Source: Sminthopsis crassicaudata
Taxonomy: Eukaryota
Assembly (NCBI RefSeq): GCF_048593235.1
Contig: NC_133617.1
Coordinates: forward strand, 394,262,067 to 394,326,066
Reading direction: 5' to 3'
DNA: 64,000 nucleotides
The position numbers and the translations under genes are program-made. Below, piece by piece: positions 2,363 through 41,052 of the stretch (positions within the stretch are counted from its first letter, which is position 1; each line of letters opens with the position of its first letter). The notes below the pieces were generated by a model. The model worked only from the letters and a program-made list of their open reading frames with translations, did not search any database and was not told the DNA's origin.

Positions 2363-7685
<5,323 letters not shown>

Positions 7686-8500
7686 GGCTCCGGCCCGGCC
7701 CCGGCCTCGGCCCCTACCCCGGCCCGGCCCCGTGATCGGATCACGGCCCCCGGCCCCAGCCGCTGAACTCAGGTCTGGGCCCGCCCTCGCCCCGGGCGCT
7801 GCCGACAGAAAGCGCCAGCGACTCAGCTCGGACCCCCGAGTTCCAGTCCCAAGATGCCCTGAATTCTTCCCTGCGGAGACCAAGCACCGTCACCCAACCG
7901 GAAGTTCCGGCCCGGGAGAGCGAGGGGGGCGGAGCCTGAAGAGAAGGGATGAACCCGTGAAGGACGCCAGAAAATCGAGAAGCTTGGGGGCGGGGAAAAA
8001 GTCGAGCCTGGAGACGTAACAGCGAACGAGCATGAGGGGGCGGGGCTAGCCGGGTTCGACCCTAAGTGAACTGGGTTTACTGAGGACTTCTATTGAGCCC
8101 GCCAGGACAGGAGGGTGGGAAGAGTAGACCCTAGGAGAGGAACATACGTGTTTTTACGCGCGCGCGGTATGGAGGTGTGGCCGAGGCGGGGCGCGGTTGA
8201 AGGGGCGTGTCTGTTCATCAAGTAGTGGGATTGGACCTAAGTAATTAGAAGGGCGGAGAGAAGGTGGACCGTGGAGGAGCTTATCTGTGCTCGCACGTGT
8301 GCGTGCGCGTGCGCGGCCGGAGACGGCGAGCCTTACCTGAGGAAGGGAAAACTCCATTCCTTTTCCCCCTAACCTTTCCATTCCCTTCCCCCTCCCGGCC
8401 CTCGGCGTTTCCTTCCTCTGGGGCCCGGAAGGCGTTTCCCATTTTGAAGACGCCCCCAGTATTCAGAAGGCACCAAAATTGCTAGCTTGGGGCCGGAGCC

Positions 8501-11500
8501 ATGGGCCCGAGCGGGGGTCTTTATGACTGTGACGACCTCCAGTGCTGGACGGCCGTGCTGGGCTGTTACAAGGACGTGGTCAGAGCCAGAGAGGGCAAGA
8601 CCCGCAAGCTTGTCGCTTTGGATGCATGGTGAGCCGAGCTTCCAGCGGAGCCCGGACGGTCCCCGAGTCTCCTGGGGAGCCTGGGGGAGGAGGGGAAGCG
8701 GAGGCGGGAGCGCGTGGTTTAACCGCCCCGGGGCGGGCTCTGGAGATGCAGACACCGGGGAGACAGCTCCTGCCTCCCATATTGTACCCTAATCGGAGGA
8801 AACCACCTGTGCTTTGCGGGTGCCTGGCACGCAGCCAGCGTTTGGTAAATGCCCTTTGATTGATAGGAAAAGGAAATTGTGGTTCCAGGGGTCCCGGAAA
8901 CCCGTGGGTCAGTGCCCAGCCAAACGCGGAGGGACACGGGGGTGGGCGTGGGTGAGCTTGTTTGTGCTCACCAACCAGGAGCAACCAGCTTCGAACCCAC
9001 GGGGAGTTCCAAAGCTGAAGGCTTGAGGGAGGGTGGGGGGAAAGGTGGAAGTAAGAACAGGTGGCAAGAGGCCCTCTCAGTCTTTATCCGGTTTTCTTTT
9101 GGAGGGATCTCCTCTATTCTCCCTGGCAACCTAGACCTTAGGAGACTCAATTTCCAGGGTTCAAAAAGGGGAGGACACATCGTGCTAGTCCCTAAGGGGT
9201 TCGGGACGGAGGAACTCTATCCAGGTGTAGTATTGTCTGGAACCTCGCTCTAAAGCAACTTAAATGTTCCACCCTGAGATCTAAGGGCTAGACTTGGGGA
9301 AAGCTGTGCCAATGGAATAGTGGCCTTCCCTGACCCATCCCCGGTACCACTGCACACACGGATACCATTGCGTTGGTCGGTGGATGCCTATTTCAGGTAT
9401 CAGGAGGAGCTGCCAGTTTCTATAAGAGAGAGAAAGGACAAATACCTCACAAGAGATGAACTGGTGAAGCTGATGGAATGGAAGCTGACGGTAAGCTTTT
9501 ACTTTCTCTGAATAAGGCGATACCTTTAGAGATGGGCACAAATCCATGCTGCACAGAGAAGGCACGGAAGAAACTTGGGTCCTTCCAGAAGGATGACCTG
9601 ACATGGCCTCTGTACTGACTAAACAAGTAACTTTTCTGATCTCCCAAATTGCTAGTTCCTTCCCCCACAATTAAATTATCTTATGTTTATTTGTGTCTTA
9701 TCTCTCTTTTGCTTTCTGCTTCTCTCTATACATACCTATATACATACATATTTATATGTTGTCTCCCTTAATGGAATGGAAGTTCCTTCAGAGCAGCAAC
9801 TATTTCAATTGTCTTTGTATCCACTGCACCTCAAACTTAGCAGGCACTCAGTGCTTGTTGATTGATGTCCACTGGGTGATAAATAGGTTACTCTATCTCT
9901 TAACTGTTTTCTAGTTTCTAAAAACATAAGTGTGTCTCATTTCCTCCCTCCCCCTCCCCCAGTGTCAGAAACAGAATACCCGTGTTAGGAATTAGGGTCC
10001 AATCGCTTCATTTCACAGAGGTAGAAACAAGCCCAGTAAGGGGAAATGACATTTACAACCAAGTTTCAGGTCTTCTAATTCCCACTTTAGTAAAGTCAAA
10101 CCCCAAGACTTGTTCCCTGCCAGGAGCTCTCTTTACTTCAATGACTTCATGTCCTTGTGTTTATAAGACAAGATTTCTTCTTGAAGTTAGGATAGGGCTT
10201 GTATCCTAGAAACTGACGGGAAATGGTTTCCATTGAAGGAGAAGAGATTGGAGTATGTAAATTGGTCTAGAACCTGCAGTCATGAAACTTGGTCATGAAT
10301 ATCAGTTCTACTACTTATTATATATAACATATATATATATAGTATATATATTATGTATATAATTATATCTTATCATATAATCCCTCTGGACTTTAGTGAG
10401 AGACTTGGACTAGATTGTGAGGGGCCTAACAGAGAGAGTCATTAAGAATTCAATTCTGTGTTCTTATCCTCCTCCTCCTGTCCTTCCCTATACACACTTA
10501 GAGGGGCAAATTCAGACCACGACTCCAGAATTTGGTGGCCACTAACACAGAGGAGTTGGTAAAGCAATGCACAGCAGCAGCTTTCTCTCTCCTACCTAAT
10601 GTGGAAGCTGCCATCACAGAACTGAGCCAGCTTAAAGCCGTGGGACCAGCTACTGCCTCTGGTGAGGAAAGAAGAGAAGGGTGAGGGAAGAGAAGGGTGG
10701 GTCCCAGCATCTGGGGGACATTTGTAACCTCTGGGCTAGAACTGAACTCCGGATCTCCTGGACTCTTGGGGAGATCCTAGAAGGGATATGCCATCTCTAA
10801 CATCCATCTCAAACTGAGAAGGCTTCATTCATTCAGTTCAGGGGCTGGAAAAGTATGTGTGACCTAAAATGATGGCTACTGACAGAGCACAAGACACTCG
10901 GCCCTTTTTCTGCTCTCCTTGAGACTTGGGAACATCCCCTCCCCCTACCTGCTGCCTTGGAACACTAGAACAGACCATTTTAATCAGTTCACTTCAGCAT
11001 TTTCCCAACCAATGGCCAAACTTGATCTCATACTACTAAAGATTTCTTCTGCTGCAGCAGATCATCCCCAGCCAATGTGGTAACCTAAAGGTTTAGAGCA
11101 ACTTACTTAAAACAAAGTAACATTCAAGGCCCTATGATGTATGGAAAGTATGGATGGTCCTGGCCTGGAGGATTCCCTGCCCTCCCGTAATCCAGTCATG
11201 CTTTCCTCAGCAATCCTGACAGCAGGTGCCCCAGAGACAACAGCATTCATGGCAGATGAGGCAGTGGCTGCTGTCCCTGGCCTCCCCGTGCTCCAGTATA
11301 CTCTCAAACACTATATCCTGTATTTGGACAAGATCCGGGCCTGTGCTAAGAGACTGAACCAAGGTAAGAGCTAGCAACTGAAAAGATGCATATACTACAG
11401 TAGTCTCAGTCTCTGGTGATCTAACTGCCTCTACTCCCAGAAGGGTTTGGGGAATGATTAGGCCTAAATATAGTGGGTAAGGGAGCTTCAGGCCGCTGGG

Positions 11501-11758
11501 ATGGTAAACTTCTGGCAGGATGCTTAGTTTGAGTGGGCTCAGAGTTGCATATTCATTTTCCCTCCTTGGGCTTTTCTCATAGTTGATGCCTCCGCAGAAT
11601 GGACTCCTCATCAGATAGAAATGTGCCTCTGGACCTGGACTGTGGCCCAGAAACTGTGTCCCACAGTTCTGCCCTCCTTTTTGTGGGAAGCCCCCAAAGC
11701 CATAGACGGTACTGAAGATGTTAGACCGTCCAAGAAACGAAAAGCTAGCATTCACTGA
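8501..11758 (+). CDS. Uncharacterised HhH-GPD-fold putative DNA glycosylase, Amun/zgc:112496-like, 236 aa
   Basis: Exons 8501-8628, 9397-9490, 10502-10661, 11211-11363, 11583-11758 (711 nt). Introns are GT-AG with phases 2,0,1,1, all compatible. Strong Kozak context GCC-ATG-G, stop TGA at 11756-11758. Protein: MGPSGGLYDCDDLQCWTAVLGCYKDVVRAREGKTRKLVALDAWYQEELPVSIRERKDKYLTRDELVKLMEWKLTRGKFRPRLQNLVATNTEELVKQCTAAAFSLLPNVEAAITELSQLKAVGPATASAILTAGAPETTAFMADEAVAAVPGLPVLQYTLKHYILYLDKIRACAKRLNQVDASAEWTPHQIEMCLWTWTVAQKLCPTVLPSFLWEAPKAIDGTEDVRPSKKRKASIH. Motifs LDxWYQEELP, ELVKLMEWKLTRGKFRPRL, LKAVGPATASA, FMADE and WTPHxxExxLW are recognised from memory as the Amun-like family. The gene model is secure; the family name is less so. 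Confidence 0.9.
10318..10378. repeat. Imperfect (TA)n tract in intron 2 of the Amun-like gene
   Basis: Direct reading. Confidence 0.8.
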
Positions 11759-11858: not shown

Positions 11859-11864
11859 ATTAAA
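11859..11864 (+). terminator. Candidate polyadenylation signal (ATTAAA) of the Amun-like gene
   Basis: ATTAAA 100 nt after the TGA at 11758. Confidence 0.45.
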
Positions 11865-13363: not shown

Positions 13364-16300
13364 CTAAGGGGGAGGCAGGACCTGTGCCCCCAGAAGGTCG
13401 TAGGCAAAGATGTTCCAGAAGATGGCAAAAAGGAGGAAGGTGGCATAGGAGAGCAATACCACCCACCAGCCACACTGGTCCTGCAGGTTCTCCTCATAGC
13501 TTCGAAGGATGGTCAGGCCCATGCTGATGCCCACGACGGCGCCCGCCAGATGGGCCATGAAGCTGGGCTGAGGGCCTGAGGCAGGCAGGGGCGGGGAGAA
13601 ACGGAGCCAAACAGCTCTGCCCACCTCTGAGCTCACTGCAGTGGGGGGAGCAAGATGTGAGGACAAGGGAATCCCTGGGAGAGCCCCAGTCTGTGAGGGG
13701 CCACTCACACCTCAGCCCAGTGGGATCTGGGTGGTGCCTACTGTACCATCTAGAGAGGGAGCGCCCCCACAGGGCTGGCAAAGACTCTATCTGTGGCCAG
13801 TCCTTTCTCCCTTCTAGTGTAGCTGACTGCTAGCCATTCACTGTTCCTCCTTTAGCTGGTGCAGGTGGGGGGTAGAGAAACCCTGTGTACCATGCTCAGA
13901 ACCTGTGAAGGGATGGGGGCTTCCTCAGGCCAGGGGAAACATTGTCCTGACCCAAATTCAGCCCTCCCCCCACACCACTGGGTTAGCCAATACTCACTGC
14001 ACACCAGCGCAAGCACCATCCTCAGCAGTTTGTAGGGGCAGCGCATCCCGGCCCAGTTCTAAAGGAGGAGGAGCATCTGGTGAGGCTTTGGATGGGGAGG
14101 CTCAAGAAGCCCATCCTAATGGCTCGGGCCAAGAAAGGGGGACAGGGCAAGCCACATCCTTTCTTCAGAGTCCCCAGCACCTCCCCTGCCAGCCCTGGAT
14201 AGACCCTCTCCTCACCATGACAACATTGGCTAGATGGGCAGAACAGAGAGCATAGACGCCCCCTGAGCCCCCTACCACGGGGGCCCGCATATCCGTGATG
14301 GAGACGGTCAAAGAACCTGTGGGAGGAAAGGAAAATTTATGAGAGGGCTATCCCAATAAGCTGTGCTCTCTGAGTACCTCAGCAAACGCCTCACCTGCCA
14401 GCACTCCCGCCAAGTAAAGGAAGCCTATCCGAAGCACCCCGTGCACCATCTCCAGGGGCACGCCGATCATGAGCTGCAGAAGAGCATTGAAGCCCAGCTG
14501 CTCCAACCTGGAGAGGGAATTTGCCCTGGTCAGAGCAGCATGGACATTGACCGAGACTTTCACAAACCAGCCCTGGTCCCTGGGGGAACAGAACGTCCCC
14601 ATGCATTACTCCCGCCCCACTGAAAATCTCCCTCCCCCTCTACTTCAGCCTGGAAGGTGGGGACAAGACACCTCTGCTCTGCAAATGCAGAGGGAGGGAC
14701 ACTTTCTCATGAGAAAGCAGGAGCGAGGGGGTTCCACCCCAGTCTGTCAGTGCCTAGTGAGTCGTTTGGCCTGGGCAAGTCCTTTTCCTCTCTGTCTGGG
14801 CCCCTACCTGGCCTGCTTCACATGGCTTTGGAAAGATACAAGCAAGAGATTATTCACCCAATTCTCATTTCAAGCGTAGGCCCTTATGGGAAATTCCTTT
14901 GGAACTATCAGAGGCCCCTATGTTGACCTGTGAGAGAGACATCCCCCCTTACCCGACATGCATGAACATGTAGGTGAGAAATCGCCAAGCGCGGGCACGG
15001 TGGCCAGGGTGGTATACCAGAGGACTCTTCATGTACTCAGGGTGATAGGTCTGCAGCACCCACTTGTTCAGTCGAGCTCCATAACACAAGAACACGATGA
15101 TCTGGAAGGATAGTGTATCTCAGTCTGGCCCCCTTGTGGCTACAAAGGGGAAATAGTTTAGAGTTGAGAATGGGCTATCCATGGCTACTTACCTGTGTGA
15201 GTGTGACAGTAGCCATGAAGACCGGAGGTGGGCAGGTTCGGTGCTGGTAGAAGTACCATCGGCGGTCCATCTCACACGGTAGGATCTCATAGGCCACATA
15301 GCGCACAAAGCGTTTATAGAAACCGAGACCTGGCTCATCCAGTAGCCCATCCCGAGGAAGGGCACGCTGCCCATTGGTGATGGCCCGCTTGAAGCTACTG
15401 GATCTTTTGCTGCTGATCTGCCAGAGAAGAGCAGAAAAAGGCCCCTGATCTCCAGCTATGGAAACGAGGGCCTGCCTGGGACACAAAGGGGCCACTTGGG
15501 AGACAGGCAGAATAACAAACGTTTTTGGTGGATTAAATTTCCAGTAGTCAATACGGATTTGTTAATAGATATTGCCACCATGTTTGTCTTCCAGTCAAGA
15601 TAATTAACTGACTTAGGTTATCTGCTATGTATAAAGCATTCCTTCTACAACTTAGTTGCACATGCTACATAAAGACACTGTGAATGTCCTTGGACTCTTA
15701 AGCCCCTAAAGGAGACAAGGGGAACCATCACCCTCAACAATAGTCCTATGGTCAGAGGATCGAGAGATTTAGACCTGAATGGGATATTAGAGATGATCTA
15801 ATCCACATTCTAAAGATGAGAATCCCAAACCACAGTAAGTAGCAGCACTAGGATTTGAACCTATGTCCAATATGCTTTCCATGACCTCCTGCTGCCTATT
15901 TCCTGGACCAAAATCCTTCCTCCGCTAAAACATCCCTTTCAGACACTCTTGGACAGATCCAAAGAGCACGGAGACCCTTAATGCCACCAATGCCCATTTC
16001 CCCCAATTACAGTGGTAATATGAACCTCACTAAGGGGGATTTCTCCCTAAATAATCCCTATCACCCCAGAAACAAGATCCAGGGGAGTAGTGGAAGCTGA
16101 GATCAGCCCAAGACCCCTGTCACTGACCAGATCTACCAACTCCTGGTAGCAGATCTGTCCTTGGTCGTTGCTCTGGGCCAATGCCACCAACATGTCCAGT
16201 TTGGCAGGGTCCAGTGGCAGCTCATGGCTGTGCACCAGGCCAGTGAAGGTCTCGACACCAATGAAGCCAGTGTTGTCAGGGTCCAGCTGCTGAAGATAGG

Positions 16301-18006: not shown

Positions 18007-18560
18007 AGAGCTGCCCGGGCGGGGGGACGGCTGCTCCGCGGACCCGGCGCTGCGGCCCCGGTCCCGGCCCCAGGCCCAGCCCCAGCTCCGCCGCGCTCTC
18101 CGCTCTGGCCGCCGCCGCCGCGGTCACACCGCCTCGCCGCACTCCCGGCCCGGCCCCGGCCCCCGCTAGAGCCGCCGCTGCCGCACACAGGGGCCAGCGC
18201 GTCACGGAGCCACCACCGTGGCAGGCGCACAAGCCACCACTCCCCTTCCCCCTCCCTCTCCTCCTCTCCTGGACAGACACTCGCGCGCGCGCGCGCCCGT
18301 GCACACGCACGTCCCACCCCTCTCTGCTCTCCACCGCTCGCTCCCAGAGCCACGCAGCCCACTCCTCTCCTGCTTCCAGATCCACACATCCACACAGGCG
18401 CCAGACTTCCCACGCCCTTTCCCCTGTTCTCCCCGTTTCTCTTTCTTCTCCCCCTCCTCCTTCAGACCGGCGACACTCACAATCACACACATACACACAA
18501 TCACACACACACATACACGCACACACACGCACACCGGGGCCCGGTGGGGGGGAGGGGAAG
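17590..18560. promoter_or_regulatory. CpG island covering the RHBDL1 promoter and exon 1
   Basis: GC- and CpG-rich segment around the ATG at 18006. Boundaries are approximate. Confidence 0.75.
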
Positions 18561-19281
18561 AAGACTCAATTCTAGGATCTTGAGCTAGAAAGGCCTTTGA
18601 GGGAGCCCCGTTATCATTCTCATTTTGCACTGTTCACTCTGCATCTACTAAGCACCTGTTACGGGAAGGGCGGCAGGCTACCCCCAGTAGGGGAAGACCA
18701 AGACGCACTCTGTACTGAGGTACCTGTCAGTCGCTGGGCCCTAAGGCACGTGCCCCTACAGGAACAAGGCCCCTCTGAACCCTCTCTGGCTCCTGATACT
18801 CACACAGGCGTGCTCAGCAGACGGGTGTCAGAGAGCCGCAGAGCAAATTGTCCCGGTTTTAGTCAGCTTTGTGTGGTCCCTTGCTTCCATCTTTATTGTT
18901 CTGAGTAAGGGCCGCGTTCCCTCATCCCACCTCAGGTCTCTCTAGTAGAAAGCCTGTGTGAGAGCTCCTAGTAAAACCATCTCAGTGGATCCAGGCCAAA
19001 AAGCGTGCTCTGACCGTCGTGTGCTACTGCGAATGCACTTAGCTGAGTACTGAGAGCAAGAAGGCCAAAGGAAAACCAGACCTTACCTTCACGGAGTTAC
19101 ATTCTCCGGCAGAGGATAAACATGCAAGCCGTTAATCTGAGCAAGAACATTCACAACTAAGGGGATCTGGGAAGGCGGAGCAATCAGAGCGAAATAAAGA
19201 AAATCTTAGAACTTAAAGGATAAAAAAAGAGAAATTTAATAGCAAATGGAAAGTACATTTGTACATCGGAAAGTAACTATT

Positions 19282-24929: not shown

Positions 24930-40225
<15,296 letters not shown>

Positions 40226-41052
40226 GGTTCCAGGAGAGGCCACGGCTACACTCCGCCGGCCGCTGGCCACCCTCAAACCGCACTTCCGGCCCAGCTCCTG
40301 CTCGGCCCGCCTGCCTGCACCAGAGAGCGCCGCGGAGCCGGCTCCGGCCTAGAGCGGCTCCCAGCAGCCACGGCGCACACGCAGCGGCGCCATCTCGTGC
40401 TCCACGATGGGCACTGCACCCAGGCCGCTAGCGGCGGACCTGCTTTCTCCCCAAGGCCTCAGTGGAAGTGTTTATAAGGCACTCTGCAGCTGCAGAAGAG
40501 GCGTGCGTCTTCATGCCCACTGTCATGTCTGAGGAGGACTGTTGCGGTGGGTAAAAAATGATTTTTTAGAAAAAAACAAAACCAAAAACGAGCATTGGCC
40601 TTGGGATCAGGAGCCTTGAGTCTGACACTAACTACTTGGCCATGGGAAAGGACACTCCCAATCTACGGACCAGGTAGGAGCCTGCCTGGGACTCTGCCCT
40701 GAGGGCAGAAGCTGAATGGAGGTGGTGGGTGCTGAAAATGGCAGCTTGATAGTGGGTCGGCATGCCTCCTGGGAGGCTCCTAACCTAACCCCACCTCCGG
40801 CTGTGAGCGGGGAGAAGGGGAAGCAAGAGGCTGAGGTCCTGAAGAATTAGGCAGGAGCCCTCATGGAAACCTCTGGCTTCTCCCAGCGAAGCCACAAATC
40901 TTTTCCCTGGAGTTCATGAAAAGTTTCCTCCTCTTCCTCAGAATGGTCAAGCGGGCAAAGTGAGGTTCCTTGGAGAAGAGGAACTGAGAAAAGTACACGA
41001 TCACCTAAAATTCTTCAGGAAGGAGCTTTCAGCCAGACTGCAAACACCCACT

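Follow-up and report, generated by a model that had tools for sequence, protein, structure and literature searches.

The known role of Drosophila Amun (CG2446) is genetic rather than biochemical: it is a Notch modifier that acts in bristle and sensory organ development. A preprint presents the protein as a nuclear regulator of transcription that has a glycosylase domain and acts in the Notch pathway (bioRxiv 10.1101/2025.04.04.647281). No paper on a vertebrate member of the same family was found in the literature that we searched. In structure, the closest described proteins include the Ogg2-type 8-oxoguanine (8-oxoG) glycosylases of M. jannaschii, S. solfataricus and T. maritima and the prokaryotic proteins of PF21790, "Putative 8-oxoguanine DNA glycosylase OGG-like protein". 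Here, we analyzed a 64,000-nucleotide (nt) stretch of Sminthopsis crassicaudata contig NC_133617.1, called the window below, in which a five-exon gene of the Amun / zgc:112496 family lies between STUB1 and RHBDL1. It is almost certainly a real, selected protein-coding gene of this family, and its product is very probably built on the predicted HhH-GPD (HhH, helix-hairpin-helix) fold of DNA glycosylases. That the gene is the marsupial orthologue of a nuclear HhH-GPD-fold protein with a glycosylase mechanism is a proposal that we regard as evenly balanced.

The gene could be assembled from the window in full (Table 1). AG before and GT after were found for all five exons of the joined sequence, and the junctions 8628/9397, 9490/10502, 10661/11211 and 11363/11583 define exons of 128/94/160/153/176 nt. 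The cumulative exon-end phases of 2, 0, 1 and 1 leave one unbroken reading frame, and the joined coding sequence of 711 nt consists of 236 codons plus TGA, with zero internal stops. The original prediction had described five GT-AG exons of compatible phases forming a stop-free open reading frame (ORF) of 236 amino acids (aa), which was reproduced exactly from the sequence; its strong Kozak start in a CpG island and its candidate ATTAAA likewise stood, the start codon context being GCCATGG and the ATTAAA being the sole canonical poly(A) hexamer from the stop codon to the RHBDL1 3' end. It had also remarked that the ORF track holds the gene only in fragments, and this is how the gene appears in the mechanical ORF list. 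An AT-rich (TA/TATA) microsatellite occupies 10320-10375 of intron 2.

How does the encoded protein compare with the known family? We searched the 53-aa exon-3 piece against 1.84 billion representative proteins and obtained 259 family representatives at E < 1e-3, the best of them 98% identical. Tick Amun was matched at E 2e-7 with 57% identity and shares W-K-L..R-G-K-[FY]-R-P, G-x-G-P-A-T-A-S and M-A-D-E over the whole ~230-aa core, whereas arthropod Amun proteins differ by their long C-terminal extensions (300-560 aa). The arthropod orthologues, from tick and from many insects and chelicerates, are named "Amun" or "protein amun" by NCBI, and it is through these tick and insect entries that the likeness to Drosophila Amun is known; the fish orthologues are named zgc:112496. 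Vertebrate models called zgc:112496, LOC or STUB1-DT are orthologues, colinear with the window protein, 44-90% identical to it and not different from it in any substantial way. They have five exons of matching sizes and the STUB1-RHBDL1 position in all mammals checked.

We then aligned 40 members: one fungus, and animals that range from sponge, coral, oyster and crinoid up to mammals. All five exon peptides are colinear with 34 homologues ranging from sponge to mammals, a homology that, by sequence comparison, is far beyond chance. Near-invariant positions are W71, K72, G76, F78, R79, R81, L82, N89, the hairpin G122-P-A-T-A-S127, F140, Y157 and W195, and a basic KKRK-type tail is conserved as well. 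The window protein carries the family motifs W-K-L-x-R-G-K-F-R-P-R-L, G-x-G-P-A-T-A-S and F-M-[AS]-D-E. Its place in the family is given by full-length colinear homology, by these motifs and by the STUB1-RHBDL1 position divergent from STUB1, a position held in koala, Monodelphis, Petaurus, Macrotis, Bos, Equus, Trichechus, Pteropus and Pygathrix. The names of the matches and the colinear alignment thus bear out the family, and the other mammals the location, that had been assigned to the gene beforehand. As judged from the alignment, this is an ancient eukaryotic family, constrained from fungi to mammals.

In marsupials, the window protein is colinear across all 236 residues with the RefSeq proteins of koala (90.3% identity) and Monodelphis (86.0% identity). 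RefSeq or UniProt entries exist for koala, Monodelphis, Tasmanian devil, Gracilinanus, wombat, bilby, Petaurus, tammar and Dromiciops. The names within the orthologue cluster include Sarcophilus LOC105749541, Gracilinanus LOC123230937 and koala LOC110221977 (236 aa), and the Monodelphis orthologue is the "uncharacterized protein STUB1-DT" (236 aa), which is UniProt F7BYQ3, "Long intergenic non-protein coding RNA 2867" (LINC02867). As a genome feature, the gene is therefore already known, an orthologue of genes in RefSeq and UniProt. The original prediction had called it an intact but hidden gene; intact it is, but at least nine marsupial species have it annotated, so that it is not hidden. The exact 236-aa window protein is absent from the 7-member, 90%-identity cluster of its marsupial orthologues, and the gene may be unannotated in this particular genome. 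The listed RefSeq isoforms of Sarcophilus start within intron 1 or another upstream exon and read into exon 2, with the canonical exon 1 missing. The window holds a counterpart, the plus-strand open frame at 9320-9511 upstream of exon 2; such a start represents an alternative first exon or else an artefact of annotation.

To compare gene structures, the koala, Monodelphis, Petaurus and Macrotis proteins were each mapped on their own genomic locus with GT-AG introns required. The exon sizes in all four are exactly those of the window, and exon 1 has the same 128 nt in 8 other mammals. The order STUB1(-)/gene(+)/RHBDL1(-) is likewise the same in the four marsupials, and ATTAAA lies 120-125 nt 3' of the stop codon in koala, Monodelphis and Petaurus. 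Pairwise ratios of nonsynonymous to synonymous substitution rates (dN/dS; NG86, window included) are 0.15-0.34 in marsupials, not near 1, and the codon-model omega is 0.31. Between the window and the four marsupials, dN/dS is 0.16-0.25 with bootstrap 95% upper limits of <=0.42, and the pairwise values as a whole have bootstrap upper limits of <=0.49. Purifying selection together with the intact ORF, splice, start and poly(A) signals leads us to reject the pseudogene reading.

The gene is not confined to marsupials either. A search with the reindeer homologue returned annotated ~230-aa proteins in about 20 eutherian genera: ruminants (Bos, Moschus, Rangifer, Odocoileus), hippopotamus, pigs, camelids, whales (Delphinapterus, Delphinus), perissodactyls (Equus, rhinoceroses), the bats Hipposideros and Pteropus, the insectivores Sorex and Erinaceus (the latter again named STUB1-DT), and the afrotherians Trichechus, Dugong and elephants, with Castor as the only rodent listed. 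Platypus, echidna, reptiles, amphibians and fish (zgc:112496) were also returned. At the DNA level, the copies of Bos indicus, Equus quagga, Trichechus and Pteropus are intact and lie on the plus strand between STUB1(-) and RHBDL1(-), with JMJD8/WDR24 and RHOT2 as the flanks beyond. Their exons measure 128/94/160/153/164 nt, so that the last exon of the eutherian orthologues is 12 nt shorter; AATAAA follows the stop codon at 52-103 nt; and pairwise dN/dS is 0.20-0.34 with an omega of 0.20. These intact orthologues, with matching synteny, exon structure and purifying selection, refute the earlier proposal that the gene had been retained in marsupials and lost in placental mammals; loss is real in some lineages only.

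One such loss was seen in the langur Pygathrix nigripes. In the same STUB1/RHBDL1 synteny, its copy is a pseudogene, in which the start codon reads ATA and deletions have removed 6 nt of exon 2 and 2 nt of exon 4; the loss is therefore lineage-specific. The HhH of this copy reads G-P-T-T-A, and its annotation is still that of a 271-aa "hypothetical protein". In the alignment, the protein models of orangutan and langur have a broken reading frame around the HhH; the orangutan model is XP_054391050 ("IF-2-like", 435 aa). The elephant and hedgehog models are without the RGRFRPRL motif; in the elephant (Loxodonta) model, Asp143 is also replaced by H and the hairpin reads G-A-A-T-A. These oddities, unlike the intact manatee and dugong copies, could reflect decay or mis-modelling. 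In the reindeer-homologue search, no human, mouse, dog or cat protein ranked above the marsupial matches, which is suggestive of loss in these species and not proof. The human locus, we assume from gene names and general knowledge rather than from human sequence, has only a long non-coding RNA (lncRNA), STUB1-DT, and in mouse the gene is apparently not annotated. The pattern is a mosaic, the gene being kept in ruminants, pigs, whales, horses, bats, sirenians, beaver and shrew and decayed in the langur.

Could the protein be a DNA glycosylase? Its structure was approached by modelling the koala orthologue with AlphaFold2 on the 40-row alignment. The model has eleven helices, a predicted local distance difference test (pLDDT) score of 87.6 and a predicted TM-score (pTM) of 0.83; residues 214-236 fall below a pLDDT of 50 and form a disordered tail, and helices 108-115 and 123-133 flank the hairpin. 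Foldseek against the PDB and Swiss-Prot models placed Ogg2-type 8-oxoG glycosylases first, with a probability of 0.96-0.99, followed by AlkA, MutY, MagIII and OGG1, so that the top matches are all HhH-GPD enzymes. With VIA-align, MjOgg gave Z 9.8 (163 residues, 3.9 Å) and SsOgg Z 9.2. Furthermore, in a Foldseek-independent scan of 48,161 PDB chains, the Tm1821 Ogg2 was best at Z 10.0, and the top 20, down to Z 5.4, all belong to the HhH-GPD superfamily, the others including EndoIII, Mag1, OGG1, MutY, AlkA, NTHL1, MagIII, AGOG, MIG and QNG1; the first unrelated folds appeared at Z 4.6. The predicted fold is well supported because the top matches are uniform, the coverage is full-length, the HhH lies at the matching place and a gap separates the matches from unrelated folds. 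The AlphaFold and Foldseek check proposed with the original prediction thus returned the glycosylase-like fold that it had expected, while its mention of a base-editing enzyme found no support beyond the fold.

The best structural matches, the Ogg2 enzymes of M. jannaschii (3knt), S. solfataricus (3fhg) and T. maritima (Tm1821, 3n0u), align over 156-169 residues at Z 9.2-10.0 with whole-length coverage. They are similar in size (~205 aa) and likewise have the HhH followed by an Asp, but they are only 12-15% identical and carry a catalytic Lys in the HhH where the Amun family has Ala. Filing the protein as Ogg2 or OGG1 is ruled out by the missing catalytic Lys, the 12-15% identity and the lack of a profile match. 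At the level of profiles, Pfam HHH matches 34 and HHH_5 32 of the 40 members below threshold (best E 1.1e-5), and PF21790 is sub-threshold in 10 of the 40 (best E 3.8e-4). The five exon peptides alone gave a weak HHH match only, at E 0.021 on the exon-3 piece. The match to the PF21790 hidden Markov model spans the HhH-to-C-terminal half, and the predicted structures are very similar. In the ESM Atlas, the fold search returned unnamed ~196-aa Gemmatimonadota proteins (TM 0.77/0.92, root-mean-square deviation 1.9 Å) and an archaeal PF21790 cluster (0.63/0.83). These relatives differ in being prokaryotic, in matching below the Pfam cut-off and, for some, in being fused to restriction-nuclease domains: OGG-like domains occur joined to PLD/NgoFVII, NucS_C, FokI-cleavage, Mrr and NmeDI nuclease domains. 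Such fusions hint at a module that serves as a sensor of DNA or of modified bases in restriction-like systems. In the AlphaFold DB clusters, the family is spread over eukaryotes, and some entries are auto-named HhH-GPD or DNA glycosylase. Phycobiliprotein, ComEA and ribosomal S13, which came up in the family-profile search of PDB sequences, had non-significant E-values, and the designed armadillo repeats matched by the exon-3 piece among PDB sequences are a chance match.

The residues around the putative active site are strongly conserved. The hairpin reads G-[VI]-G-P-A-T-A-S in 202 of 224 fetched relatives, and both the window protein and nearly all relatives have Ala (G-P-A-T-A) at the position of the Lys of bifunctional enzymes. 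As this is the Schiff-base Lys position, an active enzyme would be monofunctional, without apurinic/apyrimidinic-lyase activity. Residues 143-144, in the relatives that include that exon, are D-E in 125 of 138, E-E in 12 (cetartiodactyls) and H-E in one (elephant); one turtle has D-A in place of D-E. From the HhH Lys position to the catalytic Asp, the spacing is +18 in EndoIII, +19 in OGG1 (K249/D268) and +20 in AlkA. In the window protein, Asp143 lies at +19 from Ala124, is preceded by a Gly/Pro-containing loop and is the first residue of a helix in the koala model, which makes Asp143 the putative catalytic Asp.

In the interpretation that we favour, transcription would run divergently from the STUB1 CpG-island promoter and end tail-to-tail with RHBDL1. 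The product would be a 236-aa nuclear protein in which residues ~5-205 would adopt a two-lobed, all-helical HhH-GPD DNA-glycosylase fold, followed by a disordered KKRK tail; the nuclear role is suggested by this tail and by the preprint description of Drosophila Amun. The HhH (V-G-P-A-T-A-S) would grip the DNA backbone, the base would be flipped into the cleft between the lobes, and hydrolysis of the N-glycosidic bond would be activated by Asp143, which stands at the N-terminal end of the helix that follows the Gly/Pro loop. That the protein is a catalytically active DNA glycosylase seems to us slightly short of an even prospect.

Several points weigh against this interpretation. The Foldseek TM-scores to solved glycosylases are 0.39-0.45, under 0.5, with E 0.04-0.1, and a Z of ~10 for an all-helical protein falls in the range that the makers of the aligner regard as possibly "only a common arrangement". 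The model is that of the koala protein, 90% identical, and not of the window's own. No Pfam family reached its gathering score among the 40 members, PF00730 (HhH-GPD) had no match at E <= 1, and the family profile found nothing significant among PDB sequences; membership of the superfamily consequently rests on fold and motifs, not on sequence profiles. The assignment of Asp143 follows from spacing and predicted secondary structure and not from residue-level superposition. Enzymatic activity has been demonstrated for no family member. Finally, cattle, reindeer, hippopotamus and warthog have Glu for Asp143 (F-M-S-E-E-A) in genes that are still under purifying selection, which fits a role without need of Asp143.

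The last point leads to the main alternative, a non-catalytic binder of DNA or chromatin, in which the HhH-GPD scaffold reads DNA, damaged or modified, as part of a nuclear transcriptional regulator. The genetics of Drosophila Amun and its description as a nuclear regulator are in keeping with such a protein, as are the absence of the lyase Lys and the prokaryotic fusions to restriction-nuclease domains, in which the OGG-like domain is plausibly a DNA sensor. On the other hand, few positions are conserved from fungi to mammals as well as the Asp-Glu pair and the HhH hairpin, and such conservation is typical of active sites; the cetartiodactyl Glu could still serve as a carboxylate; and HhH-GPD homologues without catalysis, for instance S. 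pombe Mag2, are exceptional. We consider the binder rather unlikely. QNG1 (DUF2419), an enzyme of queuosine salvage, has the same fold, and QNG1/DUF2419 structures occur among the matches at Z 5.5-5.7, so the fold is not limited to DNA substrates and the protein might be an N-glycoside hydrolase acting on a free nucleotide or nucleoside or on RNA. This appears improbable, because there is strict conservation of the HhH hairpin, which is of the canonical kind that binds the DNA backbone, because DNA glycosylases match best, with a Z nearly double that of QNG1, and because the tail resembles a nuclear-localisation signal.

A further explanation would deny this particular copy a function altogether: the locus could be a recently inactivated or untranscribed relic in S. 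crassicaudata, its ORF open by chance. The absence of the exact protein from the marsupial cluster, the decay in a langur, and the other first exons used by the listed models of Sarcophilus, the closest relative, would agree with it. However, the ORF is intact, as are the Kozak ATG, the poly(A) signal and all eight splice dinucleotides, and in a relic of any relevant age constraint would be relaxed along its own branch, while the dN/dS of the window against the four marsupials is as low as given above; a relic is thus very improbable. For the glycosylase, we tentatively suggest, with more doubt than belief, that the family comprises an uncharacterised, active, monofunctional eukaryotic HhH-GPD DNA glycosylase acting on a damaged or modified base. 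Its decay to a lncRNA locus (STUB1-DT) in the primate lineage and its apparent absence from the mouse annotation would explain why it has remained unstudied, and purifying selection would maintain it in marsupials, monotremes, sauropsids, fish and many placental orders.

Both neighbours of this plus-strand gene are on the minus strand, and it is thus divergent from the STUB1 promoter and tail-to-tail with RHBDL1. Exon 1 of STUB1/CHIP lies within the minus-strand ORF 7056-7883 with its ATG at 7685, which is 816 bp from the candidate ATG of the gene. In this exon (7540-7690), which belongs to the same CpG island, the Gly-rich stretch after MKGKEEKEG is longer than in the eutherian protein. The last coding exon of RHBDL1 is at ~13364-13708 and its first exons extend up to ~18000; its GC-rich 5' region contains CA/GT-type simple repeats at 18200-18630 (H-T-H-T... 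in ORFs). Far downstream of RHBDL1, a second CpG-island-like GC peak (GC 0.62-0.65) spans 39000-41000 and is presumably the promoter of another gene. A scan of the window for bacterial promoters and terminators, a type of scan that is not relevant to a mammalian locus, found nothing.

Table 1. Features of the Amun / zgc:112496 family gene and its promoter region (window coordinates).
Feature	Position	Strand	Description
Exon 1	8501-8628	+	128 nt; residues 1-43 (partial); start codon; aligns with N-termini of family members
Exon 2	9397-9490	+	94 nt; 3' end falls within the conserved W-K-L motif
Exon 3	10502-10661	+	160 nt; RGKFRPRL motif at 10502-10525
First HhH helix and hairpin V-G-P-A-T-A-S	10622-10660	+	exon 3; residues 115-127
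Exon 4	11211-11363	+	153 nt; second HhH helix, Gly/Pro-containing loop, conserved Asp143-Glu144
Asp143-Glu144 codons (GAT GAG)	11255-11260	+	exon 4; Asp143 GAT at 11255-11257
Exon 5	11583-11758	+	176 nt; stop TGA; predicted disordered C-terminal tail
KKRK nuclear-localisation-like motif	11732-11743	+	exon 5 tail
ATTAAA poly(A) signal	11859-11864	+	101 nt 3' of the stop codon
CpG island / bidirectional promoter common to the gene and STUB1	7000-9000		GC 0.59-0.69; CpG observed/expected 0.67-0.87

The gene, in short, is not a marsupial relic, and it is neither hidden nor marsupial-specific. What remains of interest is the biochemistry of the family and the mosaic of its lineage-specific losses, that in the primate lineage included. 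The family is amenable to study in zebrafish, opossum or cattle cells. Should it prove to be an active glycosylase, the protein would count as an enzyme of DNA repair or DNA modification that the human and mouse toolkits lack.

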